Assembly (NCBI GenBank): GCA_002269645.1
Contig: NIVC01001801.1
Coordinates: 1-41,222 of the forward strand
Direction of reading: 5' to 3'
DNA: 41,222 nt
Source of the DNA: Macrostomum lignano
Taxonomy: Eukaryota
Positions 11,378 to 41,222 of this stretch are shown piece after piece. The translations under genes were made by a program, and so were the position numbers. The notes under the pieces were generated by a model. It was given only the letters and a program-made list of their open reading frames with translations. It ran no database searches and had not been told where the DNA came from. Every line of letters starts with the position of its first letter. The first letter of the stretch is position 1.

Positions 11378-11712
11378 TGAGTGAGTGAGTGAGTGAGTGA
11401 GTGAGTGAGTGAGTGAGTGAGTGAGTGAGTGAGTGAGCGAGTGAGTGAGTGAGTGAGTGAGTGAGTGAGTGAGTGAGTGAGTGAGTGAGTGAGTGAGTGA
11501 GTGAGTGAGCGAGTGAGTGAGTGAGTGAGTTAGTGAGTGAGTGAGTGAGTGAGTTAGTGAGTGAGTGAGTGAGTGAGTGAGTGAGTGAGTGAGTGAGTGA
11601 GTAAGTGAGTGAGTGAGTGAGTGAGTGAGTGAGTGAGTTAGTGAGTGAGTGAGTGAGTGAGTGAGTGAGTGAGTGAGTGAGTGCGTGAGTGAGTGAGTGA
11701 GTGAGTGAGTGA
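11378..11712. repeat. (GAGT)n microsatellite
   Basis: About 80 tetramers with rare variants. Confidence 0.98.
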
Positions 11713-12160
11713 GAGATTGGGTGTCCAGAAACGTTAAGTTTAAAATCCCGTAACGAAAAGCTCTGTGCACTGCTTAATTTCCGGTCCAATTCTGTACTTT
11801 TAGGAACCGCAGACGAAAATGTCAACACACAGTGGTCAGTGCAGTATTAGCAATATGTATTGATCAGATCCTAGCAAGTTTTGACGCAAATTTTTCCTCT
11901 AAAATCATGCGGCCCGGGGGCTGCAGCAAATCAATACGAATTGAGAATCCATGCCGCAGGGCCAAGCATTAATAAGCAGGGATCCCTAGACTCTTGCATC
12001 CGGTGTACTGCACTTGGGGGTTGTCGCACATCAATCAATTTCTTAGGGATTATATTTCTTGGGTAAAAAATATTCTGCAAAGAAAAGTTCCCATTTCTTC
12101 TTAAAAAGACTGCTGACAGCAATTATTTTGACCGAACTTTTTTGGCAGAGTAGAGCTTTG

Positions 12161-12985
12161 GACTGACTGACTGACTGACTGACTGACTGACTGACTGACT
12201 GACTGACTGACTGACTGACTGACTGACTGACTTGAGTGAGTGGGTGACTGACTGACTGACTGACTGACTGACTTGAGTGAGTGGGTGACTGACTGACTTG
12301 AGTGAGTGGGTGACTGACTGACTGACTGACTGACTGACTGACTGACTGACTTGAGTGAGTGGGTGACTGACTGACTGACTGACTGACTGACTGACTGACT
12401 GACTGACTGACTTGAGTGAGTGGGTGACTGACTGACTGACTGACTGACTGACTGACTGACTGACTGACTGACTGACTGACTGACTGACTGACTGACTTGA
12501 GTGAGTGGGTGACTGACTGACTGACTGACTGACTGACTGACTGACTGACTGACTTGAGTGAGTGGGTGACTGACTGACTGACTGACTGACTGACTGACTG
12601 ACTGACTGACTGACTGACTGACTGACTGACTTGAGTGAGTGGGTGACTGACTGACTGACTGACTGACTGACTGACTGACTGACTGACTTGAGTGAGTGGG
12701 TGACTGACTGACTGACTGACTGACTGACTGACTGACTGACTGACTGACTGACTGACTGACTGACTTGAGTGAGTGGGTGACTGACTGACTGACTGACTGA
12801 CTGACTGACTGACTGACTGACTGACTGACTGACTGACTGACTGACTTGAGTGAGTGGGTGACTGACTGACTGACTGACTGACTGACTGACTGACTGACTG
12901 ACTGACTGACTGACTGACTGACTGACTGACTGACTGACTGACTTGAGTGAGTGGGTGACTGACTGACTGACTGACTGACTGGCTG
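12161..12985. repeat. Compound (GACT)n microsatellite punctuated by TTGAGTGAGTGGGT
   Basis: Direct reading of the sequence; explains the SQSV ORFs. Confidence 0.98.
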
Positions 12986-13133
12986 ACTCCCAACCAATCG
13001 CCTACACAAAGCTGAGCCAATGAGCTCTAGCCTGAAAAAAGCATACTTAAAATAGCGCTTAGCAGTCTGTCTCTGTTTCTGCTTCTTCAATCCTTTTTTG
13101 CTTTCAACGACAAAAATTAAAATAAAAAGCACA

Positions 13134-16100
13134 ATGGTCCGAAGCGGCGACGATGGGCAGAGCGCTGCCACTGAACATTTTTCATGGATGATTCACGTCG
13201 GCAACAATTCCCCCTGCCACCGGCACCTGCAGGTAACTGGATTTGCACTGGGGACCTGGGAGGCTGGCCAGCAACTGACACTCTGGGAGGCTGGCCCAGC
13301 AACTGACACTCTGGGAGGCTGGCCCAGCAACTGACACTCTGGGAGGCTGCAACTGAACTGGGAGGCTGGAGCAACTGAGGATGGGAGGCTGGGGAGGATC
13401 TGGGAGGCTGGCCCAGCAACTGAGGATCTGGGAGGCTGGCCCAGCAACTGAGGATCTGGGAGGCTGGCCCAGCAACTGAGGATCTGGGAGGCTGGCCCAG
13501 CAACTGAGGATCTGGGAGGCTGGCCCAGCAACTGAGGATCTGGGAGGCTGGCCCAGAAACCGAGGATCTGGGAGTCGCAGAGAAAAACCGTGATATCCTT
13601 CATCGCCGAACCCGCAGAACCGGAAGCCATTCAGCATCAGGCCCATCATCGAGTTCCACCGCTGCCTAAACGGCACCGAAGCGCTCTCGTTAGATCAGCT
13701 GCTTCGGGAATCCCGCCATGAGCTGGACGCTGAGCTGCTCGCCCTGAGGCCCATCCTGGTCCTGTTTGTGTGCCTCATCGCACTGGGCGCCCTCGGCAAC
13801 GCGTTGATCATTGGCACGGTGCTGCGGAATCCCAAGATGCGAACCCCACCGAACCTGCTGGTGCTGAACCTGGCGCTATCGGACTTCATCCTGTGCTCGT
13901 TGACCCAGCCGTGCAACATCGGGCGGTTGCTGTTCTTCAACACTGCCTGGAGTAGCGGATTGGCTGCGTGCAAGATTGTCAACGCGTTGACCGGCTTGAA
14001 TATGTACGCGTCGACCTTTGCGGTGACAGCCATCGCCATCGACCGGTGCAGGGTGCGTTGACGGATTTTTTTTTGGGGGGGGGCACAGCCGGTTGAAGAC
14101 CAGCTGATGAGGGGTGAGGACACCACGGGTCATCGCTTCCGTTTGACGGCTCTTGAGATGAGAGGAGGCCACGGTGTGTTGAATAAATTATGAGAAGAGG
14201 CCTGGAGGGCAATTAGGGGACTGTTTCAGAGGCAGATCTTATTTAATGGTTAAAATTGCCTTATTTAAAAAATAATTCTTGCATGCTTTTTGCGTGATCT
14301 GAAAATGACTTGAGGTCTTCAAGCCTTTAAATTCTTTATTTCGTTCTATTGATTACGGATTTTTAAGGCAAGATTTGAAAAGAGGATTTTACTATTAATT
14401 CGCTCCCGAAAGTTAAATCATGTCTTAAAAACATTGATTCTCACTGATGCATGTGGCACTGATTCTCACTGATGCATGTGGCACTGATTCTCACTGATGC
14501 ATGTGGCACTGATTCTCACTGATTCTCACTGATTCTCACTGATGCTTGTGGCACTGATTCTCACTGATGCATGTGGCACTGATTCTCACTGATGCATGTG
14601 GCACTGATTCTCACTGATGCATGTGGCACTGATTCTCACTGACTGATTCTCACTGATGTGGCACTGATTCTCACTGATGCATGTGGCACTGATTCTCACT
14701 GACTGCATGTGGCACTGATTCTCACTGATTCTCACTGATTCTCACTGATGCTTGTGGCACTGATTCTCACTGATGCTTGTGGCACTGATTCTCACTGATG
14801 CATGTGGCACTGATTCTCACTGACTGATTCTCACTGATGTGGCACTGATTCTCACTGATGCATGTGGCACTGATTCTCACTGATGCTTGTGGCACTGATT
14901 CTCACTGATGCATGTGGCACTGATTCTCACTGATGCATGTGGCACTGATTCTCACTGATTCTCACTGATTCTCACTGATGCATGTGGCACTGATTCTCAC
15001 TGATGCATGTGGCACTGATTCTCACTGATTCTCACTGATTCTCACTGATGCTTGTGGCACTGATTCTCACTGATGCATGTGGCACTGATTCTCACTGATT
15101 CTCACTGATTCTCACTGATGCATGTGGCACTGATTCTCACTGATGCTTGTGGCACTGATTCTCACTGATGCATGTGGCACTGATTCTCACTGATTCTCAC
15201 TGATTCTCACTGATGCTTGTGGCACTGATTCTCACTGATGCATGTGGCACTGATTCTCACTGATTCTCACTGATTCTCACTGATGCTTGTGGCACTGATT
15301 CTCACTGATGCTTGTGGCACTGATTCTCACTGATGCATGTGGCACTGATTCTCACTGATGCATGTGGCACTGATTCTCACTGATGCATGTGGCACTGATT
15401 CTCACTGATGCTTGTGGCACTGATTCTCACTGATGCATGTGGCACTGATTCTCACTGATTCTCACTGATTCTCACTGATGCATGTGGCACTGATTCTCAC
15501 TGATGCTTGTGGCACTGATTCTCACTGATGCATGTGGCACTGATTCTCACTGATTCTCACTGATTCTCACTGATGCTTGTGGCACTGATTCTCACTGATG
15601 CATGTGGCACTGATTCTCACTGATTCTCACTGATTCTCACTGATGCTTGTGGCACTGATTCTCACTGATGCTTGTGGCACTGATTCTCACTGATGCATGT
15701 GGCACTGATTCTCACTGATGCATGTGGCACTGATTCTCACTGATGCATGTGGCACTGATTCTCACTGATGCTTGTGGCACTGATTCTCACTGATGCATGT
15801 GGCACTGATTCTCACTGATGCATGTGGCACTGATTCTCACTGATTCTCACTGATTCTCACTGATGCATGTGGCACTGATTCTCACTGATGCATGTGGCAC
15901 TGATTCTCACTGATTCTCACTGATTCTCACTGATGCTTGTGGCACTGATTCTCACTGATGCATGTGGCACTGATTCTCACTGATTCTCACTGATTCTCAC
16001 TGATGCATGTGGCACTGATTCTCACTGATGCTTGTGGCACTGATTCTCACTGATGCATGTGGCACTGATTCTCACTGATGCTTGTGGCACTGATTCTCAC

Positions 16101-17005
16101 TGATGCTTGTGGCACTGATTCTCACTGATTCAAATCGAGAGAAACCAACGCAATTCCCGCAGGCTGTCACCATGGCAACACCCAATCGAGCAGGCCTTGA
16201 CGCTCGCCGTACCCGCCTGGCCATCCCACTGACTTGGCTGATGGCCGGTCTGATGGCCAGCCCGCTGCTCTGGCTCGGTGCGCTCGTCCGCGATACAAGC
16301 GTAGCTCCAGCCGACAGCAGCAGCCGTGCCGAGGGCTTGGTCTGCACCGAGCGTTCGCTGAGCCACGCCGAGGCAGCCGCCAAAAAGCTGGCGTACAGCG
16401 CCGCCACAGTCGGGGTGCAGTACGCCTTGCCGCTGGCCATCCTGCTCGGCGTGTACAGACGCATCCGACGCCGGTTGCAATGCCGACTGACTCGGGGTCG
16501 ACTGGCTGAGCAACGTCGGCAGCGCAAAGCGAATCTGCTTTTAGTAGGCGTTGCTTTACTTTTCGGCATCTCTTGGCTGCCGTTGAACTGCATCAATCTG
16601 GTCACGGATGCCCGGCTGTGGCTGGCTAGACTGCAGCAGCAACAACAGCAACAGCAGCAACCGCACGCCATTTCCAGCTTCTTAGCCGAGGCGCAGTCAC
16701 TGAGCTCGGTTCGAGTGGACTTCTCCGCCCCGACCGTGCAGTCCGTCTGCCTGCTCTGCGTGCTTGCCAGCGCCTGCCTCAACCCGCTGCTCTACGGCCT
16801 GTTTAACGAGAACTTCCGGGCGGAGTTCCGGTCTCTGCTTAGCCGAAGTTCCGATTCGGCGACCGCGGCCCAGACCGCAGAAATGAGAATTCGAAGAGCT
16901 GGCGCGACATCGGAGCGGACGGGACTTCACCCGACCGACTTGGCAGTCTGTTCGGCTGGGGTGGTGACTGAGGGATTTGAGCAGCTGCTTGAGACTGAAC
17001 TTTAA
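13134..17005 (+). CDS. Neuropeptide Y/F (NPY/NPF/PrRP-type) receptor-like class A GPCR, 3 exons, 458 aa
   Basis: Exons 13134-13232 (ATG...CAG|GTAACT), 13618-14052 and 16163-17005 join in phase 0 with no indel. Motifs: LGALGN (TM1), NLALSD (TM2), CKIV...TAIAIDRCR (TM3), QYALP (TM5), LFGISWLPLNCINL (TM6), SACLNPLLYGLFNENFRAEF (TM7/H8). N-terminal NGT glycosylation site. Exon 1 is less certain than exons 2-3. Confidence 0.88.
13251..13575. repeat. 27-bp minisatellite (CTGGGAGGCTGGCCCAGCAACTGAGGAT-like) in receptor intron 1
   Basis: About 12 units fill most of the 385-bp intron. Confidence 0.95.
14447..16130. repeat. Composite satellite of 25-bp (GATGCWTGTGGCACTGATTCTCACT) and 10-bp (GATTCTCACT) units, with higher-order structure
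   Basis: Direct reading; 15061-15420 recurs identically at 15421-15780. Confidence 0.97.
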
Positions 17006-18470: not shown

Positions 18471-18855
18471 TAGAAGTTACAATTAAGCACTAGAAGACAT
18501 CTTCGCTATTGTAAAGTATACATGATATTGCATAAAATTTAAATAAAAATTTATACCACTCGATATGATAAAACACGCAAGTACACAAATGTACTTTTTA
18601 AAATTGAAATATAACCTTGCACAGATACAGTGAGCAAACTTATTTTTAGCTCTACAATTGACTAGAAAATTAATTTTGTGTAACAAAATTGAGTTCCATT
18701 GAATGCGAAAGCAAAGTAAGGATTTTGCACATTAAATGATGACATGTATAATAAGTCACAATATTTTTTTTAAATAAATACATTGCACATTATTTCTGAT
18801 CAAACAAATTAATATAACTATTTAATATAAAATGCAGCGTTGTTTAAAATTAAAG

Positions 18856-20004
18856 ACCAACAGTTGAGGGGAGAGTGACAACAGATAAGGGGGAGGGACT
18901 AACAGGTGAGGGGGGAGTGACCAACAGGTGAGGGGGGAGTGACCAACAGGTGAGGGGGAGTGACCAACAGGTGAGGGGGAGGGACTAACAGGTGAGGAGA
19001 TTGACCAACAGGTGAGGGGGGAGTGACCAACAGGTGAGGGGGAGGGACTAACAGGTGAGGGGGGAATGACCAACAGCTGAGGGGGGAGTGACCAACAGGT
19101 GAGGGGGAGGGACCAACAGGTGAGGGGGATGACCAACAGCTGAGGGGGGAGTGACCAACAGGTGAGGGGGAGGGACCAACAGGTGAGGGGGAGGGACCAA
19201 CAGGTGAGGGGGGAGTGACCAACAGCTGAGGGGGAGTGACCAACAGGTGAGGGGGAGTCACCAACAGGTGAGGGGGTGACCAACAGGTGAGGGGGAGGGA
19301 CCAACAGGTGAGGGGGGAGTGACCAACAGCTGAGGGGGGAGTGACCAACAGGTGAGGGGGGAGTGACCAACAGGTGAGGGGGGTGACCAACAGGTGAGGG
19401 GGAGGGACTAACAGGTGAGGGGAGAGTGACAACAGATAAGGGGGAGTGACCAACAGGTGAGGGGAGTGACAACAGATAAGGGGGAGTGACAACAGATAAG
19501 GGGGAGTGACCAACAGGTGAGGGGAGTGACAACAGATAAGGGGGAGTGACCAACAGGTGAGGGGAGTGACCAACAGGTGAGGGGGAGGGACCAACAGGTG
19601 AGGGGGGAATGACCAACAGCTGAGGGGGAGTGACCAACAGGTGAGGGGGGGACTAACAGGTGAGGGGGAGTGACCAACAGGTGAGGGGGGAGTGACCAAC
19701 AGGTGAGGGGGAGTGACCAACAGGTGAGGGGGGGACTAACAGGTGAGGAGATTGACCAACAGGTAAGGGGGGAGTGACCAACAGGTGAGGGGGGAATGAC
19801 CAACAGCTGAGGGGGAGTGACCAACAGGTGAGGGGGAGGGACTAACAGGTGAGGGGGAGGGACTAACAGGTGAGGGGGAGGGACTAACAGGTGAGGGGGG
19901 AGTGACCAGCAGCTGAGGGGGGAGTGACCAACAGGTGAGGGGGAGGGACTAACAGGTGAGGGGGGAGTGGCCAACAGGTATGAGGAGAGTGACCAACAGG
20001 TGAG
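18856..20004. repeat. G-rich ~21-22 bp minisatellite (GACCAACAGGTGAGGGGGAGT)n immediately 3' of the MLK stop codon
   Basis: About 50 variant units with G4-G6 tracts. Confidence 0.96.
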
Positions 20005-20015
20005 TGAGAGCCGAC

Positions 20016-21033
20016 TCAAACGCAGCTGTTTTTATCATCGTCGCCCTCGTCTGGATGCGTGGGCGTGTTGCCCACCGCGGAGCCGTAGCCGGTGGAATCT
20101 GACGGAGTCTGACGGATGACGAAGGACGGGGGCGGCGGGTCTTCATCATCTGGCGATGCTGGACAGTCTGGATCTTCAACGGCCGCCGCCACCGCTTCCG
20201 CAGAGGAAGTGGCTGGCGCAGCAGCAGCGGCAGCAGCAGCGGAGGCGGCCATTTCCGCTTGTCTCCGACGAACCAGCAGGTCGAGCTGGTAGGGCCGCTC
20301 CAGACTCTCTGCCGCTCCCGCGCTGCCGCAGCCAATTTCGCAGAGTTCCTCGTGTCCGCTGCCGCTGCTGCTCCGCTTCCGGCGGGGCGGCGGCCGAAGA
20401 TAAGTCGACCCAGCCTGCTCGGCATCAGTCTCGTCGTCGAAGGTCACGTGACGGGCCGGATGCTGCGGACGGTGGTGCGGATGCGACTCGGTGTCGCTGC
20501 TCTGCGCCCGGAACCGGCGGGGCAGCGAGGCGGAGCCGGACCTGACGGAGGCGGCGCGGACGCTCAGCAGGGCGGCAGCAGCGCCTGCAGAGTTGCCACC
20601 GGCCTCCGTCAGCACGCGTGGCGAATTCGTAGATTCTTCTTCGCCGCCTTCGCCACCGTCGCCGTCGCCGTCGAGTTCATCGACAGAGCTGATCGGCGGC
20701 CGAAGGTCGGCGGGCAGACAGGCCAGCCGGACGTCGGCGTGCAGCACCGGAGCGGCCAGCAGGACGGCCGGGGCGGCCCAGGCTGGCAGGCGGCCGCGGG
20801 CGGCCGGGCGACGGGCGAGGGCTTCGCGAAGGCGGGACAGCAGCGACTGGTGCGGCCTCCTGATTGATGGGGCGGCGCCGCTGTCTGAGGGAGTGCGAGG
20901 GGGGCGGGCGGGCAATTTTTTAGTTTTTTAGCGGCTCTTTTTACTCAAGCCACTCAGATGCAGGTGTCCAGCACCTTAGGAAGGTTTCGGCATTTGACGC
21001 TCTCTGACTCCATAGGCTTCTGTGTTTCTGTCA

Positions 21034-27385: not shown

Positions 27386-28916
27386 CTCTCTCTCTCTCTC
27401 TGGCCTGACGAAGAGGCCAGAGGCTCGAAACCGGTAGCCCAGATTTAATTAATTATTTTTTAAAAACGCCGTGACTTCTCTTCTCTCTCTTTCTCTTTCT
27501 CTCCTCACCTGCAGTTCATCGAAGTCGTCAAAGCCGACACTGGCGATGTCCTTCAATCTGTGCAGCACCTCGGCAAACGCTGGCCGACCTTCCGGCGCCT
27601 CGGACCAGCAGTCCTCGAGCAGGCGACGGAACCCAACGGGACAGCCGTCGGGAATGGGCAGCCGGAACAGGCCCCTGGCTACATTGTACATGATCTGGTA
27701 GGGCAGCAGGTTGGCGTAAGGCACCTCCCCGGTCAGCAGTTCCCAGAGCACGACGCCGTAGGACCAGACATCGGCGTGCCAGGTGTAGGGGCACTGGCCG
27801 CGCAGCTGCTCCGGACTCATGTAGGCGTGAGTCCCGACACCGCCTGGGCCGCCGGTTTGGTCAGCAGCCGCAGCGGCGGCAGCGGCTACGGCCGAGGAGG
27901 TCGCAGAATCATCGTTGGCAGCAGTAGCGGGTTCAACATCGGGCAGAGTTATGCAGCACTGTTTGGCCAGGCCGAAATCTGAGATTAATAATACCTGACG
28001 ATTGAGCAGCCAGTCGCGCTGGCGCTCATGCTCAGCCAGGTCGTCGATTGATTCGGCATCGGCTTGAGGCGGCGGCATTGCGTGTTTTAGCAGGACTGGG
28101 TGTTGAGAAAGAAAACAGAAAATGAATTAAAATAGTGTATTTTCTACTTTAAAATTGTTTTTTACCGTATACTACTTATAAGAAAAACGTTTGTCAGTAG
28201 TATTATTTGAATATTAAAGAAACGATAACCATCGATTTCACGCCTCAAAAAGCTATTGCCTTAGTTTAGCTATTTCCAAGAAAATTTTTAACTAAAATCT
28301 TCGGTCGCATTTATTTATAATAATTACCTACCATCATACTACTAAGAGCTAATAAAGTCGATGCGGTAGTAGTGTCTAAGCATAATAATGCTTGTGATTG
28401 TGGCGTACTAACCGTGACCAATCTAGCTTAACCTGATTCTAGTCAGTCTTTTAAAACATTATAATGTGGGACTAACTAAATAAATAATCAGCAATAAGTG
28501 TATATTAAATAAAAAATCAACGTATACTACTTAAATGGTCAATAGTACTATGGTATTTTAAATAGTAGCTGATTTATCAAAAATAATCAGGATGCTCATA
28601 CTAAAGTACACATTGGTACATTAGTCTCGCAATCTAGAATAGTGTCGCTAAATTAATCTAAGCAATTGCCCTCGATTCTGTGTGTTGGGACTGAGAAATC
28701 GAAGACTCCTCGCTGAAGTTGCATCAAACTAAATTATTCGTCTTGGCCTGTCTATCATCAGTGCTCGGGGATTCTTCCCTAGCAATTCGACAGTCAACAA
28801 CTCTGAACTGCCTGCCTGTACCATTAAGAATGCTTTGATATATATATATATATATATCAAACTAAAAGTGCTCAGTCAGGCAGGCAGTCAAGCTAAATTC
28901 GATTTCTCTCTCTCTA

Positions 28917-28994
<78 letters not shown>

Positions 28995-31900
28995 GTTAAC
29001 GGCATTATTTATTATTCAATTAAATTATTCATAGCAGCCAATCGATTCATATAACAATAATTGCATTTATTCAGATATTAAAATATTCATCAGTTCATTC
29101 TTCTATTCATCCGCAACGACCGGGATATGCCGGGAACAGAACGGCTTTCAGTGCCACAGCCTGTCAGCCAGTCAGCATTTCTATCTACTGTTCACTATGT
29201 ACAGTATGGCTCAATTGACTGCCCCAGTCTGACCCATACCAGTGTGCCCCATATGCATAGTGTCTACCTATCTAACTATAGTGTCTACCTATCTAACTAT
29301 AGTGTCTACCTATCTAACTATAGTGTCTACATATCTAACTATAGTGTCTACCTATCTAACTATAGTGTCTACCTATCTAACTATAGTGTCTACCTATCTA
29401 ACTATAGTGTCTACCTATCTGCATAGTGTCTACCTATCTGCATAGTGTCTACCTATCTGCATAGTGTCTACCTATCTGCATAGTGTCTACCTATCTGCAT
29501 AGTGTCTACCTATCTGCATAGTGTCTACCTATCTAACTATAGTGTCTACCTATCTAACTTTAGTGTCTACCTATCTAACTATAGTGTCTACCTATCTGCA
29601 TAGTGTCTACCTATCTAACTATAGTGTCTACCTATCTAACTATAGTGTCTACCTATCTAACTATAGTGTCTAACTATCTAACTATAGTGTCTACCTATCT
29701 AACTATAGTGTCTACCTATCTGCATAGTGTCTACCTATCTAACTTTAGTGTCTACCTATCTAACTATAGTGTCTACCTATCTAACTTTAGTGTCTACCTA
29801 TCTAACTATAGTGTCTACCTATCTAACTATAGTGTCTACCTATCTAACTATAGTGTCTACCTATCTAACTATAGTGTCTACCTATCTAACTATAGTGTCT
29901 ACCTATCTGCATAGTGTCTACCTATCTAACTTTAGTGTCTACCTATCTAACTATAGTGTCTACCTATCTAACTATAGTGTCTACCTATCTAACTATAGTG
30001 TCTACCTATCTGCATAGTGTCTACCTATCTAACTATAGTGTCTACCTATCTGCATAGTGTCTACCTATCTAACTATAGTGTCTACCTATCTGCATAGTGT
30101 CTACCTATCTAACTTAGTGTCTACCTATCTAACTATAGTGTCTACCTATCTAACTTAGTGTCTACCTATCTAACTATAGTGTCTACCTATCTAACTATAG
30201 TGTCTACCTATCTAACTATAGTGTCTACCTATCTAACTATAGTGTCTACCTATCTAACTATAGTGTCTACCTATCTGCATAGTGTCTACCTATCTAACTT
30301 TAGTGTCTACCTATCTAACTATAGTGTCTACCTATCTAACTTTAGTGTCTACCTATCTAACTATAGTGTCTACCTATCTAACTATAGTGTCTACCTATCT
30401 AACTATAGTGTCTACCTATCTAACTATAGTGTCTACCTATCTAACTATAGTGTCTACCTATCTAACTATAGTGTCTACCTATCTGCATAGTGTCTACCTA
30501 TCTAACTTAGTGTCTACCTATCTAACTATAGTGTCTACCTATCTAACTATAGTGTCTACCTATCTAACTATAGTGTCTACCTATCTGCATAGTGTCTACC
30601 TATCTAACTATAGTGTCTACCTATCTAACTATAGTGTCTACCTATCTGCAGATAGTGTCTTCTACCTATCTACTATAGTGTCTACCTATCTAACTATAGT
30701 GTCTACCTTTCTACCCGCAGTGTCTACCTACCTACCTGTAGTGTCTATCTACCTGTAGTGTCTACCCATCCAACTATAGTGTCTACCTATCGACCTGCAG
30801 TGTCTACCTATCTACCTGTAGTGTCCATCTACCTGTAGTGTCTACCTATCTACCTGTAGTGTCTACCTATCTACCTGTAGTGTCTACCTATCTACCTGTA
30901 GTGTCTATCTACCTGTAGTGTCTACCTATCTACCTGCAGTGTCTACCTATCTACCTGTAGTGTCTACCTATCTACCTGTAGTGTCTATCTACCTGTAGTG
31001 TCTATCTACCTGTAGTAACTATCTACCTGTAGTGTCTACCTATCTACCTGTAATGTCTACCAATTTACGTATCCAAGCCCAATCTCCTACCCAGGTACGC
31101 AGAGCCACTCACTGTTGCTAGACTTCAGGTCCCGGTGGAAGACGGTCACAGGTGCGCCCTCGTGCAGGAATCGCATGGCCTCGGCCACCTGTCCGGCCCA
31201 GTTCACAATCACGTCCGGTGGAAGTCGCCGGCCGCGTAAAAAATTATTAAGAGCTCCGCCAGCGGCAAATTGCAACAGCAGAGCGGGTGGCGGCTCGGCC
31301 ACAATGGCCAGAACTCGGACAATGTTCGGGTGGCGGCACAGCCAGATAAGCTCGGCCTCCCGGCGCACCTGGTCGGGGCAGAAGCCGCTGCCGAACAGTT
31401 TCACTGCGACTGGCTGGCCGCGCCAGGTGGCTCGGTGGACTTCGGCGAAGCCACCAGATCCGAGGAGACAGTCGTATGCGATCTCATCGGATGAGACCGT
31501 GGGTGGCGACTGCTGCTGCTCATGCTCATGCTGATGATGCCCATGAGGATCTTGCTGATGCTGGGGAACGCTGTGGGGTGGATGAAAGATGCAGGTGTCT
31601 ATTGAAGTGCTTTGTTTTTTTTTTAAACTGGGAAAATCAGATCAAACAGATTATTTTACACAGCGGCACAGATCAAACAGATTATATTACAGTGGCACAG
31701 ATCAAACAGAGTATATTACACAGCGGCACAGATCAAACAGATTATATTACACAGCGGCACAGATCAAACAGATTATATTACACAGCGGCACATCAAACAG
31801 ATTATATTACACAGCGGCGCAGATCAAACAGATTATATTACACAGCGGCACAGTTCAAACAGATTATATTACACAGCGGCACAGATCAAACAGATTATAT

Positions 31901-32847
31901 TACACAGCGGCACAGATCAAACAGATTATATTACACAGCGGCACAGATCAAACAGATTTAATTACACAGCAGCACAGATCAAACAGATTTAACTACACAG
32001 CGGCACAGATCAAACAGATTTAATTACACAGCGGCGCAGATCAAACAGATTATATTACACAGCGGCACAGTTCAAACAGATTATATTACACAGCGGCACA
32101 GATCAAACAGATTATATTACACAGCGGCGCAGATCAAACAGATTTAATTACACAGCGGCACAGATCAAACAGATTTTATTACACAGCGGCACAGATCAAA
32201 CAGATTATATTACACAGCGGCGCAGATCAAACAGATTTAATTACACAGCGGAACAGATCAAACAGATTATATTACACAGCGGCACAGATCAAACAGATTT
32301 AATTACACAGCGGCACAGATCAAACAGATTATATTACACAGCGGCACAGATAAAACAGATTATATTACACAGCGGCACACATCAAATAGATTTATCATAG
32401 AACGGCACAGATCAAACACAATCTCAATATATCATCAATGCTGGATACAGAATAACCCAGAAGCAATATTCACCTTCCAACTGCCTGCACCTCCTGCTGA
32501 CAGGCGCTGGCAATCTCAGCAGACGGTCGAACAAAATTTCCTGGCAACAATTTGAGCACGGTACGCTGAGATTCTGGCCTGGAATATTCTCCAGCGCTTG
32601 CACCTCCCTGGCTAGGAGAAGCCGGCGCAATGGCTACAAACCAGCCCTCGTCCCGACTGTCTCGAGGATCGCGAGATACAACAAGAATCCTAGCGCCAGC
32701 CGTGAAGCTGAGTTCGTCATCATCGGCGCCAGTATAGGAGGCAATGGCGGTGTACTGCAGCGGAGGATCGAGGTACTCGGCCCACACCGGATTGGAGTCC
32801 TGCCTCTCTAGCTGATGCTGATGCTGCTGAGTACTTTGAGCAGACAT
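20016..32847 (-). CDS. MLK: Mixed-lineage kinase (MAP3K9/10/11/21, slipper-like): SH3, TKL kinase, leucine zipper, CRIB; 7 exons, 1106 aa
   Basis: Exons 32847-32474, 31570-31113, 28095-27509, 26968-26443, 25771-25475, 22440-22231 and 20884-20016 total 3321 nt, with all AG/GT phases consistent. SH3: YTAIASYTGADDDELSF...EGWF...LPGNFV. Kinase: GSGGFAEV, VAVK, REAE, HRDLKSSN|ILL, ISDFGLA, GTHAYMSPE, DVWSYGVVLWELLTGEVPY. Zipper: DWRQQVQAAFDQLRDKERQLEE. CRIB: ISQPTDVKHLFHV. The exon F donor and exact start codon are less certain. Confidence 0.9.
21907..22140. repeat. Four copies of a ~65-70 bp tandem repeat with core CGGCATGTACATTGYTTCTATTTATAGACTAGCGCTT
   Basis: Direct reading. Confidence 0.9.
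22763..25025 (+). mobile_element. Decayed autonomous DNA transposon, probably Chapaev3/CMC superfamily, inside an MLK intron
   Basis: Termini are CACTGGCCAAC (22763) and GTTGACCAGTG (25025). Imperfect subterminal inverted repeats (agctgatt..ctgaatc.aaaaatc) lie at both ends. Transposase remnants across 23086-24752 in shifting frames: FCYICGEY, WREPSNHISDCYFC, VICVDLKMVNFL.GQQSGYTKFPCFLCMWDSR, PPLHIKL.LIKQF, KAGIFDG, SIKMHYLNSHL..FPDNLGALSD.QGER..QDI..ME.RYQG.W...MMADYCW. It has frameshifts and deletions. The superfamily call rests on recalled motifs and the CACTG ends. Confidence 0.8.
25049..25175 (+). mobile_element. SINE family 2, 5'-truncated copy with 8-bp TSD
   Basis: Homologous to 7545-7895 with a single gagggccaaccc unit. 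It is flanked by ACTAAAAA at 25041-25048 and 25176-25183. Confidence 0.75.
25960..26385. repeat. Degenerate ~31-bp repeat (AAGGTAACCTAAAAAACTAAA...)
   Basis: About 13 units in an MLK intron. Confidence 0.9.
26983..27400. repeat. (GGTTTCCATK)n 10-bp repeat followed by (CA)n(CT)n
   Basis: Direct reading; fills the MLK intron 26969-27508. Confidence 0.92.
28903..28992. repeat. (CT)n microsatellite
   Basis: Direct reading. Confidence 0.97.
29268..31052. repeat. 19-21 bp minisatellite (TAGTGTCTACCTATCTAACTA / ...CTGCA / ...CTACCTG)
   Basis: About 85 units; the variant type changes toward the right end. Confidence 0.97.
31637..32420. repeat. 31-bp minisatellite (CAGATCAAACAGATTATATTACACAGCGGCA)n
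   Basis: About 25 units. Confidence 0.97.
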
Positions 32848-35800
32848 GAGTGTCTTAAAAATAAAAAGATTTGTTTCGCAGCCCCTGTTCTGCTGGTCAA
32901 ATCTAGCAGACTGAATTTGAGATTCAACTTCAGCAGGGCAAAGACACTGAAGTGGATTGATTGAGTTATTAATAAAATACAAACAGGCATTATATTTTAA
33001 AATAATAGTCATATTTAGAAAGCATAGCTTTGCTAAAGGACAGGAAACTTATGATTCTTGGAAAATTTAAGAAAGCAAGTTTTGCAAAAAATGCTTACAG
33101 AGATTACACACAAAAATTGTTTTTGCTTTTGATAGGAGACAGACCCAATATTTATCTTTTGATGTGCTTAACCTTTTTATAGCTCTATTGATATTCAGAA
33201 AGCTTCATTTAGAAAATTAGGATTTTATCTTTATTTTATATTCCTGTGTCCAAGTCTTTAAAATGACACAGCTTGACTTATTAGTTTTATGAATCTATTT
33301 TATCATACTTAGCTTAATGACTACATAACAAAATGTCCAATTGATAAATAGATTTGCTTTTAAGACTAGTTTTGAAACAAATCTGCCTTGGTCACCCTGT
33401 CACCTGGCCAAATTGGCTGGGTCAGCCAGGTTTTGCACATGTATGGTTAGTGCAACATTCTTATATCATTGTGTAAGATTGTGTAAAAATGGAAATTATA
33501 TATATCAATTATAGCTTAATATTCAAGGGCTCTTTGATATATAATATTGAGGCAGAAAGCCTTTTTAGTTTAATAGATAGAATGGCAACAAATATTTTGC
33601 ACTGCTTGGCACATATATTTATATTTACAAACAGCACAAGATTGAGGGGCCTAGGGAAGTGCAAAAAGATAGCGTGGTGCATACTACCCACCTTAGCTAG
33701 ACCTGGAGGTTACATTATAAATATAATTGTAATGTAATACAAATGTATTGTAATACAAATATTAGTGTAAATATTACATTAGAATTCTACCATAGATTTA
33801 GATTTGTTGCAAACAAAAAAATATTTTTTTTTAAATTAATTTAAATATCACAATTGTCAAGGTTTGGGATTTTTAGTTTTTATTTAGTTATTATTAGGGC
33901 TTTGTTATTATTGTCTATAGTTACAGGTACTTAATAGATTTGACAGCTTTTAGATAGAAAAAATAGATATATAAAACATATTTCCTATATCAAAAAACAT
34001 ATGATATGAGTGCAACACTTAGTTGAGCTAGGCCTAGGCCCTAATTGTGAACTCTGCCTTTGATTCACTAACAACATGTCCCAATTCTTTTTAACAGATT
34101 TTTTAATTTAATATTATATAACTTTTAAAAATTGCAATAAAAAAGTTACAAATACAAAAAGAATCTTATAATAAGCCTAAATCTTAGTTGACTTGCAGAA
34201 TCTCATTATAAAAAATAAGGTAGACCTAAATAAGTTTCGTAGCTTCATTTAACTTTTTCTTTTTGAAAAGTTGTTTCCTCTGCTAGCAGTCTGCCAATAG
34301 AATATGCATGCAAATGGCATGCAAATGTTAGGCCTAGATTATTAAATCAAAATTTCAAAGTTTTGCAACAAATTTAGTTTTAGGCCTAGTCTAACATTTT
34401 AAAAAATCAAGTTTTTCTTGATAAAAATGCTATTGCTAGTGTTAATAAACCTGTGTTCTATTTCTATAAAATTATTATGTACAATGTCAACAGTTAGGCC
34501 CTTTTAGGCTTATAAAACAAAAAGCAATATAAATTAAAGATAAAGAATACCTTTTTCACAAAAAACTTTTTAACAATAGGCCTATGGCAGTATGGCTATT
34601 ATATTTGGATTTCTTTTGAGATAATGAAAACTAAGCTTAGGTCTATAAAATCTCCTTGGTAAAAAGACTTATTAAAAAACTGTGCATTGTGCTGTGGAAT
34701 CGGGGGGCCTACACGAAAAATCAGGCATTTGTATTTTCAAAATTGAACAACAACGTCAGTCGTCAATGGTTAGGCTAGGCCTAGACGCTAGACCTAGTTC
34801 TAGTTCCTACCTAAGTCAGTCCTAAATGACTGAATCAGTATGCTGTATAAAAACGGCTTATAAACCGATTGTTGTTTTAAAATATAGGTTTAGCTGTACG
34901 TTTATGCACACTATCTCCATTCATTTAGCAAGTAAGGCTACAAGAGACCACACTAGTGCCGATGCACTAACCTTACTACACACAGGTCTGTTTTCTAACA
35001 AAATAGCAGTACGAATATTTATAAAAATGCTTTTGTAAACAATTAAGGTGGTTTTTCTAAAAACTTTCCTATGTGCTTTCTTAAATAAGGTTTAGCATTT
35101 AAACGTAAGCAAACGGGTTTACATATTAGTTTGTTATAACTTTCAGCCGTCTTCATTTTCACCACCTCCGCTATCCGCTCCCACACTCTCCACCAACTAC
35201 GAGGCTTTTCATATTACCAATTCCAGAATCAGAATCGGTTCGGATCTTCCAAGAAAAACAGCAAATATTTAATTCTGTTGAATTTTTGACTGCCTTAACA
35301 ACCTCACTTAGCACAATTTTTCACTTTCTTCTAGGCGATTGTCATTCAATAATAAAAACTTTATAGCACGTATCTCCCTCTAGTTATGGAGACAAAAAGT
35401 TGATGCTTCACAAATTTGTTCTGGTTCTGGAACCATAACAAGCAATATGAAAAGGCCCTACCTCACCATCTCCGCTCCCTTACTACTCTCCACCAAAGTC
35501 ATGTGGTACTAGTTTGAACGAAGATTTTATTAGTATAATAACTCAACGTCTTGCATAATTGCTGGAATTTCCAATGCATGTGAATAATATATATTAATAT
35601 ATTTGAATAAACAGCGAGCTTTAGGCCAAATATGCACAAAAATACGAAACTAAGTTAATCATTCAGAATATAGAAAGCAGGTGCATCCGTATATTGTACT
35701 CAGCGTAGCATTAAAGTAAAATAATATATTATAATACTATTACTATATTATTGCGCCTGTTTTACTTTTATTCCTTAATCCTAGATACTATCCAAAGCTT

Positions 35801-37089
35801 CCAATTCGAAATCAATCGCATTCGCAGCTGCAGGCTACAGCAAATTGTTTACCGATCATTAATAGAAAATTCGTAATTTAAATATCAAAGATAAAAATAC
35901 AGGTGCCTGCACGTTTACACTGGACATGTACCACATTTGTATCTAAACTGTAAACAAACACGGCAGTGGTTTGGAAAATTAATAAACCAAGTCATATCCT
36001 AAGAATTTTTGAATTAACGCCACTTACTCCGCTTCTCGGGCCAAAAGTTATTTAAATATAGCAATTGCACCCGTATAGCGGATGGACTAAAATTATTAAT
36101 ATTTTTCATTCCAATAAGTTGGCTGGGCGATTAATAATATGGATTAGTTTATTTTATAATTCACACTACGTATACACTTATTGTAAATAAAATATTACAG
36201 ATTAGTTTATCACGATAGTGAATTGCGTGGAGGATAACAGTCTGGCGCAATGTTGCAGAAAATAAAAGTTATTATTCGAGACATAAGAAAATCTATTTGC
36301 ATAGCAACGTCGGTTGTTTTCTTTCGTTCTGACCAACTTTTAAATAAATCAGTCATCAGAAATATTTCGATAATTTTATGCACGCAAAAAACCCGTGTTG
36401 CTTTGCAAGTCTTTAGGAAAATTGTAACAAAATAAAAAAAGCATTTTTTCATTAAGCTTAGCGCGTAACTCGCAGCAAAAACGACAAAATTAAACTATTG
36501 GAAAATTTGCGGAATTAAAGCCAAATTTAGCAACGCAAGCACAACATAAAGATATTCGCCGTTTATATTAAAAACTTTAGAATTTTATATTAATACAACA
36601 ATTAAAATATATGTAAACATTTGAAGACTGTAGAAAGCTTGTCAATCTTTTAATATAGTACTTTATAAGTAGACTAATATTGAATATTTTACTGAACTTT
36701 CCGTGGCCTGTGAACTATCTATTGTCTTACCATCTATTAGATTGAAAATGAATCACAACAGTGAAACAAACAAAAATATAGCGTATGAAAAAAACAAAGA
36801 CGATGTTAATTAATATTGAGGGACGAATTATGAAAAATTATCTCGTCAATCATGATTATAAAAAGTGAGTTGCTTGGGTTTATATTTTGTTTAACTTCGC
36901 TCGCAACAAAACATTTAAGCGGTCGGCAGCGGCTCCTCTTCCAGACAGGCTGCGGGCTTTGTCTCCATCAGCTCGCCGGTGAAGAGGCTGCAAACGATTA
37001 AGGAAATTGAAAATAGAATTTGAACATCGCGAGGTTAACAGTATCGATAGGGAATACCAAAAAATCCAATATAGAAATTTTAAATTTAA

Positions 37090-37700
37090 ATAATAAACTT
37101 TAAAGTTAGAAGGGATATCCCAATAATGAACTTTCAAGTTGGAAGGGAAATCCCAAGAGCGAACTTTAAAGTTCAAGGGAAATCCCAAGAATGAACGTTC
37201 AAGTTGGAAGGGAAATCCCAAGAGCGAACTTTAAAGTTCAAGGGAAATCCCAAGAATGAACTTTAAAGTTAGAAGGGAAATCCCAATAATGAACGTTCAA
37301 GTTGGAAGGGAAATCCCAAGAGCGAACTTTAAAGTTGGAAGGGAAATCCCAAGAATGAACTTTAAAGTTAGAAGGAAATCCCAATAATGAACGTTCAAGT
37401 TGGAAGGGAAATCCCAAGAGCGAACTTTAAAGTTGGAAGGGAAATCCCAAGAATGAACTTTAAAGTTGGAAGGGAAATCCCAAGAATGAACTTAAAAGTT
37501 GGAAGGGAAATCCCAAGAATGAACTTTAAAGTTGGAAGGGAAATCCCAAGAATGAACTTAAAAGTTGGAAGGGAAATCCCAAGAATGAACTTTAAAGTTG
37601 GAAGGGAAATCCCAAGAATTAACTTCAAAGTTGGAAGGGAAATCCCAATAGCCAACTGTAAAGTTCAAGGGGAAATCCCAAGAATGAACTCCCAAAGTTC
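37090..37700. repeat. 33-bp minisatellite (AAAGTTGGAAGGGAAATCCCAAGAATGAACTTT)n
   Basis: About 18 units in the last intron of the ODC-like gene. Confidence 0.96.
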
Positions 37701-39090
37701 GAAGGAAATTCTAAAGTTCCAAGTAAAAATGTTCCAGCAAAGTTCAAGACAGCACATGTAAATTTCCAGGAAGAAAAGCCGAATTCGAAGCCACTCTTAG
37801 AATTAAAAAAACAGCCACGGCTCACCAGTGCATCAGCCTGGCAGCGGTCGGACAGGCCCTCAGGCCGCGCCATAGCAACCAGTCACGCGACGCTCTGAGC
37901 TCTGGCAGCCGCACGAGGTTCAACGGTCCGCGCCGCCGCAGTCGGCCAGTCGGCTGGCACGCCGGTCTCTGCTGCCGCTGCAGCCGCCGCCCTCGCACCA
38001 CGGCTGAAGAGGCCGCAAAGTTGCCGCCGAGGCCCGGGGGCCGCTGAGCCGGTAGCTGTAGCCGCCACAGCCTGGCTGCTCGGCCGCCGCTTTAGCCAAC
38101 ACCTGGTTGGGCGATGCCTGACGGATTCGGCTAGCAACGCCGGAGTCAGGTCGCAGAGTAGACGAGGCTGACAGTCACCGTTTCCAATACCTATTTAAGG
38201 CAGCGCATTTTGAGAGAAACCGCTCGAAATACGTTATAAAAAATTACTCCGTTTCTAAAATGGTTTTAAAGGCTTAAATGTTTGCAAAAGAAATACCCTG
38301 TATTATTGTTGTGACGCTGTAGCAACGAAGTATTTACAGCTTTTTTGTATTAATAGCCTGTTAATTTTAATTGGTAATTTCATAAAAATCGCATTATCAG
38401 CATCACACTCATTTTACTCTCAAAAAATTATGCCGCAAAACAACATTTGTTTAATAAAGTTAGGCAAAATACGAGTAGTTACAAAAAATCTACAGTAGCA
38501 TAATTAAGAATTCTAATTTTGACGTATAAAAATAACTCTCTTACTATAATGGAAAATATAAAAAGTCTCACCGACAGCGTTCGCAAAGGCCGGCAGGGCC
38601 CGCCCGGCCAAGGCGCCGGTGGACAGACATCCGAGGTCGACAACATCGGCATTGGCATGGCGCGAGACGCCTGGCCAAGGCCAGAGTACCGCAGGCGTCG
38701 ACGCGGCAGCAGCCCACTCGGCGTCGACGTCGGAGTTGACCTCGCCGCCGTCGTCGCCCTCGCATTCGTTGTCGTCGCCGAACCAGACGGCTACGCCGGC
38801 AACTCGCAGTCCGTGGCGTCTGGCGGCGGCGCCAGCAGGCGGGGCGCCTCTTCGGGCCGGGCGCCCAGCCGGTGGCAGCGGGGCGATGCGGCCAGCAGAA
38901 GCAGCAGCTCGACGTCCGGCCAAGCCGCGGCTAGGCGGGCCAGCTCCGGCTCCGAGTCGAATACGGTGACGCCGACGCCAAGGCGACGAGCGTGCCTGGC
39001 CAGGCCGCGAGTTTTGCACGGGTTGGCCAGCAGGATGGCGTGGCCCGGGACTCCGGCGGACACGGCAGCGTTTAGGTCGGACTGCTCAAT

Positions 39091-39455
39091 CAAGGTCAAT
39101 TGGGACAATTGAAGGTCAATTGGGAACAATTGAAGGTTAATTGGGGCAATTGAAGGTCAATTGGGACAATTGAATGTCAATTGGGACAATTGAATGTCAA
39201 TTGCGGACAATTGAAGGTCAATTGGACAATTGAAGGTCAATTGGGACAATTGAAGGTCACATTGGGACAATTGAAGGTCAATTGGACAATTGAAGGTCAA
39301 TTGGGACAATTGAAGGTCAATTGGGACAATTGAAGGTCAATTGGGACAATTGAAGGTCAATTAGGACAATTGAAGGTCAATTAGGACAATTGAAGGTCAA
39401 TTGGGACAATTATGGTCAATTGGGACAATAAAGGTCAATTTGATCAATTAAGGTC
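39091..39455. repeat. 20-bp minisatellite (GAAGGTCAATTGGGACAATT)n
   Basis: About 18 units; on the gene's (-) strand the array ends only 6 nt upstream of the acceptor CAG at 39084-39082. Confidence 0.96.
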
Positions 39456-39486
39456 AAGTAACGTGGGCGAAGTACACGTCAGGTCA

Positions 39487-39560
39487 ACTCGGAATAATAT
39501 TTGTGTGCCCTGAGCAAGACACTTAACTCTGAATTGCTTCAATTACTACTATTATTATTA
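39487..39560 (+). mobile_element. SINE family 1 fragment
   Basis: actcggaataatatttgtgtgccctgagcaagacacttaactctgaattgcttca matches the SINE1 core. Confidence 0.75.
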
Positions 39561-40073
39561 TAGGCAAATAAGGTCAAAGACAGGTTATTTTAACCGTCAG
39601 CCTCACCTTAGAGTAGGCCCGAAAGGACCAGCGGCCGCTGAGAGCCAACACGTGGGTCAGTGGCCAGCTGCCCAGAGTCTGGGCGCTGGTTGACGCGTGC
39701 ACGCCGGGGAAACCGGCTGCACCAGTCGGCGCAGACAGCGCTGGGGCTGGCAAGTCGCAGGCCACAACGGCTGATCGCATTGCTCAAGATTGGGCAGGTG
39801 AGGCGCCAGAGCACATCCAATTGGTGGGCAAACTGCCGGTGTTGGGCTGAGAGCAGGTGCTGCTGCTGAGGCTGCTGATGCTCAGTTGCGATTCTCTCAT
39901 CAGGTAAATAACACAAAAACAACGCTAAACTTGCTACTGATCTAAATTAAGTCTTTGTTAGTAGTATGACATGTATATGATGCGCAAGTATAAAAAATTA
40001 AATCTGATTGATTGCAACAGACAATGGAGGCGATAAAATATTTAAGAGGAAACACTCAAAAAAACAGAAAAAG

Positions 40074-40187
40074 TCAACAATCCAGAGTCAAGTGCCAACA
40101 CGGATCAGGGTCCCAAGGTGGGACTCGATTGTGATCAGCTAGCACTAGGCGCCGGCAGGCACTCAGGCGGCTCTGCGATGCGTCCAC
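40074..40187 (-). promoter_or_regulatory. 3' exon of a putative uCC-type regulatory uORF (PPW stall motif) upstream of the ODC/AZIN-like gene
   Basis: After acceptor CCCGCAG|GTG (40187) the frame reads VDASQSRLSACRRLVLADHNRVPPWDPDPCWHLTLDC* (PPW at 40121-40113, TGA at 40076-40074). It lies on the same strand about 170 nt upstream of the first ODC-like ATG (39900). Confidence 0.7.
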
Positions 40188-41222
40188 CTGCGGGCAGCGG
40201 GGCAGATGATGGGGAGTGATTCATGCGTGTGGGCTGTGCCACATTATGGCTTTTTCAGCAAATGAGTTATTATAAAATAATTTAAGAATTAAAATAACAT
40301 AGGCCCTCATCGAAACATTTTTCATTTCAATCTTTCAGTGTTTGTGTTATGCTTTTATGCAGTGTATTTTAATGCTTCTATGTAATTTGTTGCACTTTTG
40401 GGCTATTTTTGTGGTCTATGTTGCATGTCTATAGATTGTCTATAGATTTTTCAAACTTATTCCAATATGGAACTACACAATATACATATGGTAGCAAACA
40501 TGTCTATTGGTTAAGTCTATAACCCAATAGAAGACTCGAGTTCCTCCTAAAAAAGCTTTAAAGCTATAAAATTTCTATGGCACCAAGTCTGACAGTTGGG
40601 TGAAGATGGGTCGAATTAGTCAGTGGTTAGTCAATATGGGGTATATATAAGACTTATGGTTGATGTCTGTCAGTTCATCTGTTACTCTTTTTGTCTGCCA
40701 CAAAATATTTATTACAACATTAGCATTATGATATTAGAATGAGATAGCAATAGATAAACTCTTTTTAATATTAGTGATAACAAGCAACTAATATTTATTA
40801 GAAGTATAAGCATATCTAAAAAATATTTACCATAATTTTTTGTTTATATTTTTATTAACCTGGCTATCTGTCAATCATCTATCAAATATAAGCCTAACAG
40901 ATAAATTATGAATGCAATAAATCATCTAATTAAAGACATTGAGTTTTATGGACTAGAAGATTGGTTAAAATTAAAATTGTCTCCTATTGGATATGTAGTA
41001 GGGCATAGTTTAGGGGCAGAATTTAGACAGGACAAATATGCTTTATACTACTGTCAGTAGTTTTGGCCAGCGAAGGTAATTATGATGGGGGTAAACCGCG
41101 AATTTTTGGGCTCTCTACTAATATAGAACAGTTGGGCCTCCTAGAAAAGAAAGCCTGTCTGAACACCCATGCTGCATTCCGCAGCTCAACTTAGAATTTA
41201 AGGAAGTTAAGGTAAAAGGGAT

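Follow-up and report, generated by a model that had tools for sequence, protein, structure and literature searches.

Can a gene that has exchanged most key residues of ornithine decarboxylase (ODC), and whose reading frame appears to be broken again and again, still encode a functional protein, and what might such a protein do? The question is raised by a minus-strand locus at positions 36915–39900 of a 41,222-nt stretch of the flatworm Macrostomum lignano genome (contig NIVC01001801.1, assembly GCA_002269645.1; "the window" denotes this whole stretch). An original prediction, made from the letters of the window, described the locus as a degenerate ODC-fold protein acting as an antizyme inhibitor. 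Here we report that the frame disruptions are assembly errors and that the gene, annotated as BOX15_Mlig015075 (hereafter Mlig015075), is intact and kept by purifying selection; judged by its residues, its product is essentially certain to be a functional pseudoenzyme. The explanation that best covers the findings as a whole, and which we favor by a little, is that of a catalytically dead ODC, regulated through an upstream conserved coding region (uCC), that evolved independently into an antizyme inhibitor.

An Intact Four-Exon Gene Beneath a Noisy Sequence

A continuous protein can be read from the window with about 20 frame corrections. We stitched this translation together under the guidance of homology and compared it to a collection of 5.8 billion proteins, which returned three matches: the M. 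lignano "hypothetical protein BOX15_Mlig015075g3" (410 aa; P0001) and, from Logan assemblies, two proteins without a name (P0002 and P0003). Positions 36915 and 39900 (minus strand) are the stop and start of the annotated four-exon coding sequence (CDS) of BOX15_Mlig015075 (410 aa), and the boundaries placed originally were therefore right. The peptide strings quoted with them are all present in the six-frame translation of the window, but there they are scattered over different frames with stops between them, while FPGVHASTSAQ, SFRAYSK, VW(F/L)GDD, VDLGC, and LPEL..GDWLLW lie in one unbroken frame in P0001, P0002, and P0003. Assembly GCA_002269645.1 contains two loci for P0001, L001 (NIVC01004130.1) and L002 (NIVC01002144.1), and a four-exon GT-AG model yields the same 1233-nt CDS at both. 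At 36915–39900 the window is AT-rich apart from four GC-rich minus-strand blocks, and the introns between these carry 20-bp and 33-bp tandem arrays. The features of the gene, in the order of transcription and all on the minus strand of the window unless stated, are as follows (residue changes are given from ODC to P0001).

L001 3126–3179, about 5.5 kb beyond the window end and upstream of this minus-strand gene: first exon of the uCC (ITRKRRKRVNLRVILCPS) with the putative AUU start; GTAAGT donor
40089–40187, minus: second exon part of the uCC, VDAS...DHNRVPPWDPDPFGT-stop; acceptor CAG/GTGGAC at 40187; indel errors in the window copy
39901–40088, minus: 5' leader from the uCC stop to the main ATG; 189 nt in the polished locus
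39607–39900, minus: coding exon 1, Met1–Lys99 of P0001, with FPGVHASTSAQ (K69 to Q75) and SFRAYSK (D88 to R95); donor AAG/GTGAGG; 7 indel errors in the window copy
39082–39606, minus: intron 1, with a 20-bp tandem array of about 18 copies at 39092–39457
38572–39081, minus: coding exon 2, with ANPCK, VWFGDD (H197 to W198), VDLGC (GGG loop lost), and the equivalent of the antizyme-binding element, KTRGLARHARRLGVGVTVFDSEPELAR; 3 indel errors in the window copy
38191–38571, minus: intron 2, GTGAGA...AAATAG
37826–38190, minus: coding exon 3, with RLLCDLTP (equivalent of AEPGR), AESVVMATRVLAK, DCGGDPL, LPELSVGDWLLW, and RACPTAA (Y389 to C); 10 indel errors in the window copy
36988–37825, minus: intron 3, with a 33-bp tandem array of about 19 copies at 37092–37709
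36915–36987, minus: coding exon 4, LFTGELMETKPAACLEEEPLPTA, stop TAA; identical to the polished loci

For exon 3, an acceptor placed by eye (tgtcag/CC) was dropped, as the annotation and the transcripts use the upstream acceptor AAATAG/GT. The copy number of the intron 1 (20-bp) and intron 3 (33-bp) arrays varies among the window, L001, and L002.

Aligned with L001 over 12 kb, the window shows 41 mismatches and 92 gap openings, and aligned with L002 over 6.2 kb, 13 mismatches and 68 gap openings, with an identity of about 98.6% in each case. The differences specific to the window are indels of 1–2 nt: the CDS contains 20 of them, the three introns contain 24, and the leader 6. The few "substitutions" of the window copy sit clustered beside indels. 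Such an excess of indels over substitutions, alike in coding and noncoding DNA, points to an unpolished long-read consensus rather than to pseudogene decay: the frameshifts of the window are assembly indel errors. The original prediction had left the frame changes as a question for cDNA and did not recognize this cause. Where L001 and L002 disagree, the window mostly sides with L002, and the window copy is probably the L002 locus in a noisier assembly; the error pattern, rather than documentation, suggests that this assembly is an older, unpolished one.

The same pattern of about one 1–2-nt indel per 100–130 bp, with very few substitutions, extends over positions 29257–41222 and probably over the whole window. 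Apparent frameshifts in the other genes of the window are thus suspect as assembly errors, and the practical lesson is that they should not be taken as signs of pseudogenization.

An ODC Fold Without the ODC Active Site

Exon 2 of the window by itself matches the Pfam family PF02784 (E 7.7e-08), and P0001 matches this N-terminal barrel domain with 44.6 bits (cut-off 23.4, E 1.5e-11). A profile of Mlig015075, P0002, and P0003, which together we call family A, recognizes human ODC with 67.7 bits (E 8.6e-18) and AZIN1 with 47.3 bits (E 1.4e-11). An AlphaFold (AF2) model based on a 36-sequence alignment reached a predicted local distance difference test score (pLDDT) of 70.8 overall and of about 90 in the barrel, which displays the 8 beta/alpha pattern; an earlier run with a 3-sequence alignment (pLDDT 49) was left out of the fold search. 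The best Foldseek matches of the model are the ODCs of T. brucei and human (E ~1e-22, top match 3.8e-22; template modeling score 0.6–0.7). P0001 does not match Pfam PF00278, the C-terminal domain, and model confidence is low in the C-terminal part; the LPE..GDWLL..(G)A motifs of this region align to ODC, and the Foldseek alignments cover about 350–380 columns.

We scored the 18 key residues of ODC (the set of Ivanov et al. 2010, as given in PMC5574924) in an alignment of the family with 73 ODC homologues and human ODC (MAFFT; HMMER), for which the human reference was checked to be identical to 2on3_A. Family A has changed 14–15 of the 18: K69Q, D88R, R154L, K169R, H197W, S200D, G236C, G237L, E274D, R277P, C360G or gap, D364N/T (D364 is retained in P0003), G387R, Y389C, and F397H. 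Kept are ANPCK, FDSEPEL, and LPEL..GDWLL. With the Schiff-base lysine and 13–14 other key residues replaced, Mlig015075 is predicted neither to bind pyridoxal 5'-phosphate (PLP) in the manner of ODC nor to decarboxylate ornithine, and we infer that it is an ODC homologue without decarboxylase activity.

Most of the residue changes originally proposed by eye hold on the error-free sequence, namely Lys69 to Gln (FPGVHASTSAQ), Asp88 to Arg (FRAYSK), His197 to Trp (VWFGDD), and the phosphate loop GGG to GCL (VDLGC), as does the retention of ANPCK, FDSE.EL, and LPE...DW.L; the corrected sequence brings back neither Lys69, nor His197, nor GGG. Two readings need revision. The reported change of AEPGR to AESVR contains a frameshift artefact, as the protein reads AESVV, and AESV sits eight residues past the true equivalent: a gap-free alignment places RIIAEPGR against RLLCDLTP (a predicted strand at 278–282 of the model), so that E274 becomes D and R277 becomes P. 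The reported change of TC360DGLD to DCGGAD reads DCGGDPL in the true sequence, where the alignment is ambiguous and the Cys is missing in one orthologue.

Spliced Transcripts and Purifying Selection

Counterparts of the gene were found in the sequencing run SRR28338166 (L003) and in SRR30276804 and SRR30276812 (L004/L005), two sample sets presumed to come from Macrostomum relatives. They are short, intron-less contigs, colinear with the M. lignano exons over all three junctions, and therefore represent spliced transcripts; the reading frame is intact in each. Nei-Gojobori estimates of the ratio of nonsynonymous to synonymous substitution rates (dN/dS) are as follows.

M. lignano versus P0002: dN/dS 0.156, dS 0.70
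M. lignano versus P0003: dN/dS 0.247, dS 1.13
P0002 versus P0003: dN/dS 0.237, dS 0.95

Rather than a neutral value, we thus find ratios of 0.156–0.247, and the ratio within family A (omega) is at most 0.35 in every segment of the protein. The Mlig015075 protein is kept by purifying selection.

These results bear on two explanations that would leave the locus without a role as a pseudoenzyme. Were it a decaying, unprocessed ODC pseudogene, the frame changes and stops of the window would be real and its odd residues would reflect neutral drift, as the ODC-like peptides in all three frames, interrupted by in-frame stops, might suggest. Yet the differences of the window from two polished loci are almost all 1–2-nt indels spread evenly over introns, leader, and exons, the CDS is intact and identical at L001 and L002, and the reading frame is preserved, with dN/dS of 0.16–0.25, in the spliced transcripts of the orthologues. 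We consequently reject pseudogene status, which we regard as most improbable, and the earlier view that the locus is not in simple decay is borne out by the intact frame at both loci and by selection in the transcripts. That the protein is still an enzyme, a decarboxylase or another catalyst working through different residues or a different cofactor, might be argued from the purifying selection on the former active-site region, but it is scarcely credible: Lys69, the PLP-ring contacts D88, E274, and H197, the phosphate loop G236–G237, R277, and Y389 have given way to chemically unrelated residues, and at position 69 family A (Gln) disagrees with a second family (Asp), described below.

A Second Family of Degenerate Paralogues

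An exhaustive hidden Markov model search of 1.84 billion representative proteins returned 1200 relatives, among which the next best after family A were P0004, P0007, and P0010; P0010 and the members of its cluster are M. lignano BOX15_Mlig005245 g1–g3. This second family (Mlig005245 and relatives; family B; 472 aa; P0153, P0010, P0004, P0007) is encoded at two M. lignano loci, L008 and L009 (NIVC01001413.1 and NIVC01003177.1). It has changed 14 of the 18 key residues, including K69D, and has D88R, R154L, and E274D in common with family A; its dN/dS is 0.33. The two families are monophyletic in 89 of 100 neighbor-joining bootstraps, in a crude tree in which long-branch attraction is possible. 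The sequencing runs that yielded family A transcripts also contain those of family B, and both families are present in all three sample sets, which indicates that the duplication is older than the divergence of the three sources and that both copies were retained.

Existing annotation of the Macrostomum genes goes no further than "hypothetical" or "Orn_Arg_deC_N domain-containing" protein. They are not orthologues of vertebrate AZIN1 or AZIN2, as they form a Macrostomum-specific clade and the family A profile favors ODC (67.7 bits) over AZIN1 (47.3 bits). Both points agree with the earlier view of an origin independent of the vertebrate antizyme inhibitors. That the protein is also more degenerate than AZIN1 proved correct, and the statement extends to planarian ODC6, in which 9 of the 18 key residues are changed against 14–15 here.

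A Spliced uCC With a Putative AUU Start in the Leader

Upstream of the main ATG, the M. lignano gene carries a frame that ends in ...VDASAEPPECLPALVLADHNRVPPWDPDPFGT-stop, the L004/L005 leader one that ends in ...VDASSSEPPDSPKRSVGGDHNRIPPWDPDP-stop, and the leaders of family B (genome loci L008/L009 and transcripts L010–L014) read ...PEPPD...DHN(R/S)(E/D)PPWDPDP. Most of the variation that five sequences show within the 12 codons D-H-N-x-x-P-P-W-D-P-D-P is synonymous. The transcripts also have in common a 5' segment, GAAAAUU(A/C)CGCGUAAAAAG, which encodes I(T/P)RKK(K/R)... without an in-frame AUG, and the complete peptide I(T/P)RKK..RV.L.P...PPD...DHNxxPPWDPDP can be read in four mRNAs, with synonymous changes inside the conserved codons. 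The putative start is an AUU in the context GAAAAUU(A/C)CG, with A at -3, about 40 codons ahead of PPW.

In M. lignano the uCC is itself spliced. Its two exons are joined in frame over a 6.5-kb intron whose acceptor, CAG/GTGGAC at L001 9713, corresponds to window position 40187; the spliced uCC comprises 50 codons (ITRKRRKRVNLRVILCPSVDASAEPPECLPALVLADHNRVPPWDPDPFGT), and the window holds the second part only (40187–40089). An AUG-initiated upstream reading frame (MNHSPSS...) was rejected, as its AUG is intronic and the AUU-containing first exon lies 6.5 kb upstream. Over the two paralogue families and three sample sets the uCC is conserved at 48–55 codons and ends in DHNxxPPWDPDP. The leader therefore has the sequence features of the uCC class: a conserved non-AUG coding region, a near-cognate start in good context, and PPW near the C-terminus. 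The original mention of a uCC-like leader was well founded, since the peptide is conserved in transcripts of the two other sample sets and in the paralogous family.

In the family B transcripts L010 and L011 (SRR30276804/12) the uCC runs without a stop past the main ATG, which it overlaps in a different frame; in the other sequences the uCC stop lies 107–247 nt upstream of the main ATG. The UniProt model A0A1I8GZH3 (P0010) joins the uCC peptide to the main open reading frame (ORF), which is probably an artefact of annotation or assembly.

The class of uCC-regulated mRNAs of ODC homologues was reportedly described by Ivanov, Loughran, and Atkins in 2008. Such regions are known in the ODC homologues of several animal phyla (PMC2811004), and the AUU-initiated uCC of vertebrate AZIN1, with its C-terminal PPW, mediates polyamine-dependent repression by eIF5A-sensitive stalling and ribosome queuing (PMC2811004, PMC8705083, PMC9082881). 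The conservation of the Macrostomum uCC argues for polyamine-linked regulation, and translation of Mlig015075 is likely to be controlled by polyamines through this element.

Antizyme Inhibitor or Another Kind of Pseudoenzyme

A role of Mlig015075 as an antizyme inhibitor is plausible on its sequence, the chances for and against being about equal. In the mechanism that we propose, ribosomes translating the uCC at high polyamine levels would stall at PPW, as they do on vertebrate AZIN1 mRNA; the stall would promote further initiation some 40 codons upstream, at the weak AUU, and so reduce translation of the main ORF. At low polyamine levels the Mlig015075 protein would be made. It would then most likely bind antizyme by its retained antizyme-binding helices, and thereby free active ODC, polyamine uptake, or both from antizyme.

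The segment best retained relative to ODC, in both families, corresponds to human residues 100–147 and includes the antizyme-binding element (AZBE); here identity to the ODC consensus is 0.42–0.53, versus 0.18–0.3 in the PLP-lysine region. All six proteins of families A and B retain P113, K115, A123, D134, and E138 and have Arg in place of K141; L139 is kept in family A only. Position 125 (N125), where AZIN1 presumably carries Lys, is Arg in five of the six and His in P0003. Five AZBE residues, K115, A123, E138, L139, and K141, are common to ODC, AZIN1, and AZIN2 (PMC4066113); D134 forms a salt bridge to K153 of AZ1 (PMC4595762), and residues 125 and 140 are reported to govern the higher antizyme affinity of the inhibitor over ODC (PMC3084279). 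The dimerization and active-site interface residues R277, D332, Y389, K169, G387, and F397 are replaced, which speaks against ODC-like dimers, as expected of a monomeric antizyme binder. An M. lignano antizyme with a UUU-UGA shift site exists (PMC1874602).

Several observations weigh against an antizyme inhibitor. The residues Q116, Q119, V137, and R144, which contact AZ1 in human ODC, are changed. The tightest constraint within family A falls not on the AZBE but on residues 48–98, the former PLP-lysine region (omega 0.06–0.10), and on residues 276–330 (0.03–0.17 for both stretches together), which could indicate a different binding surface. Profile and word-indexed searches returned no intact Macrostomum ODC, only ODCs of protists, arthropods, and amphibians; the word-indexed search likewise did not return family B, which is known to exist. 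The partner that antizyme would otherwise degrade is thus not demonstrated. In planarians, the RNA interference (RNAi) phenotype of degenerate ODC paralogues was independent of putrescine, difluoromethylornithine, and antizyme co-silencing (PMC5574924). The Macrostomum kinship of the two transcript sample sets, finally, is a presumption.

As candidates for a Macrostomum ODC, we discarded P0008, the best canonical match to the family profile, and its relative P0159, both of which come from marine metatranscriptomes (JGI 3300006393, ERR1719229) and not from a flatworm. A further 20 named representatives belonged to protists, a pseudoscorpion, a mite, and a frog, with no Macrostomum ODC among them.

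Mlig015075 might instead be a functional pseudoenzyme whose role is other than antizyme sequestration, the uCC merely coupling its dosage to the polyamine level; it might inhibit ODC by forming heterodimers with it, pair with the other dead paralogue in a heterodimer, or act independently of polyamines, as proposed for planarian ODC5/6. Inhibition of ODC through heterodimerization was reportedly proposed by Ivanov et al. in 2010. The planarian precedent (PMC5574924), the concentration of constraint on the remodeled stretches 48–98 and 276–330, the changed AZ1 contacts, and the retention of two paralogue families in every sample set all favor a role of this kind, which we consider a serious contender though not the one we would expect to prevail. 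It is countered by the AZBE, the part of the protein most like canonical ODC, and by the uCC, which links the gene to polyamine homeostasis; a heterodimer with ODC in particular is made less likely by the replacement of most of K169, D364, G387, Y389, F397, and R277. A more speculative version, and an unlikely one in our estimate, is that the two dead-ODC families constitute a pseudoenzyme pair titrated by polyamines, possibly a heterodimer, in which the remodeled face of the former active site has come to bind a new ligand or partner. If this were so, the polyamine-sensing uCC circuit would have gained a new output branch in this flatworm, an animal that regenerates and is rich in stem cells.

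Other Features of the Window

The window is unusually rich in long minisatellite arrays (4225–5271, 6813–7332, 11303–13171, 18822–20019, 30000–31068, and 31638–32418). Several of their frames stay open and yield "repeat peptides" (THEL..., SVSQ..., PLTCWSL..., and those of 21-bp and 31-bp units). Most appear to be intronic or intergenic, and the array at 18822–20019 lies within a block of 64% GC. The remaining coding features are as follows.

1755–2120, plus: ORF resembling a transglutaminase core by eye, with no Pfam match at E <0.001, possibly due to indel errors
6087–6656, minus, and 7960–8595, minus: ORFs with the look of a G-protein-coupled receptor, with no Pfam match
16103–17005, plus: exon of a rhodopsin-family seven-transmembrane receptor (Pfam 7tm_1, E 3.4e-14)
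27449–28078, minus: exon of a protein kinase C-lobe (Pfam PK_Tyr_Ser-Thr, E 3e-22)
32470–33012, minus: SH3-domain exon

The kinase and SH3 exons look like parts of one gene resembling a mixed-lineage kinase, with large, repeat-filled introns.

Comparison With Known Systems

Ivanov, Firth, and Atkins are said to have cataloged catalytically inactive ODC homologues in 2010. It is established that such homologues have emerged recurrently, some with lineage-specific duplications, and that uCCs occur in mRNAs of ODC homologues (PMC2811004, PMC5574924). A literature search that included the gene identifiers found no paper naming the Macrostomum genes; the primary surveys of uCCs and inactive ODCs were outside its coverage. 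New here are the extreme degeneration, the co-retention of two families, and the clean, intron-split AUU/PPW uCC present in both.

Measured against canonical ODC (human ODC1, T. brucei), the Macrostomum protein has in common the PF02784 barrel and probably the two-domain fold as a whole, the 100–147 segment, and the LPE..GDW motif, but it has lost the catalytic and cofactor residues, is shorter (410 aa), aligns with no C-terminal degron-like tail, and has no match to PF00278. With planarian ODC5/ODC6 (Smed/Dj) it belongs among flatworm lineage-specific ODC paralogues with key-residue substitutions. Planarian ODC6, however, has 9 of the 18 key residues changed, including K69S, D88S, R154A, and H197F/Y (PMC5574924), fewer than the 14–15 seen here, and the Macrostomum proteins form a two-family clade of their own. 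RNAi of planarian ODC5/6 argued against a role as an antizyme inhibitor (PMC5574924).

A close parallel is vertebrate AZIN1, an ODC paralogue without decarboxylase activity, as is predicted for the Macrostomum proteins; shared with it are a non-AUG (AUU) uCC bearing PPW near its end, an antizyme-binding element retained at least in part, and, in five of the six Macrostomum proteins, a basic residue (Arg) at position 125. The two are nonetheless not orthologous, as AZIN1 arose in early vertebrates (PMC2811004). AZIN1 also keeps Lys69 and most key residues, whereas 14–15 of the 18 are replaced in Macrostomum, and antizyme binding is proven for AZIN1 but putative for the Macrostomum proteins. To our knowledge, almost no dead ODC paralogue outside vertebrates has been tested, although such proteins are thought to be recurrent regulators of polyamine homeostasis. 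M. lignano supports RNAi and transgenesis. It is thus a tractable animal in which one can ask whether the uCC mechanism operates outside vertebrates, whether a protein that has lost 14–15 of 18 key residues binds antizyme as AZIN1 does, and, given the puzzling planarian result, what purpose dead ODC paralogues serve.

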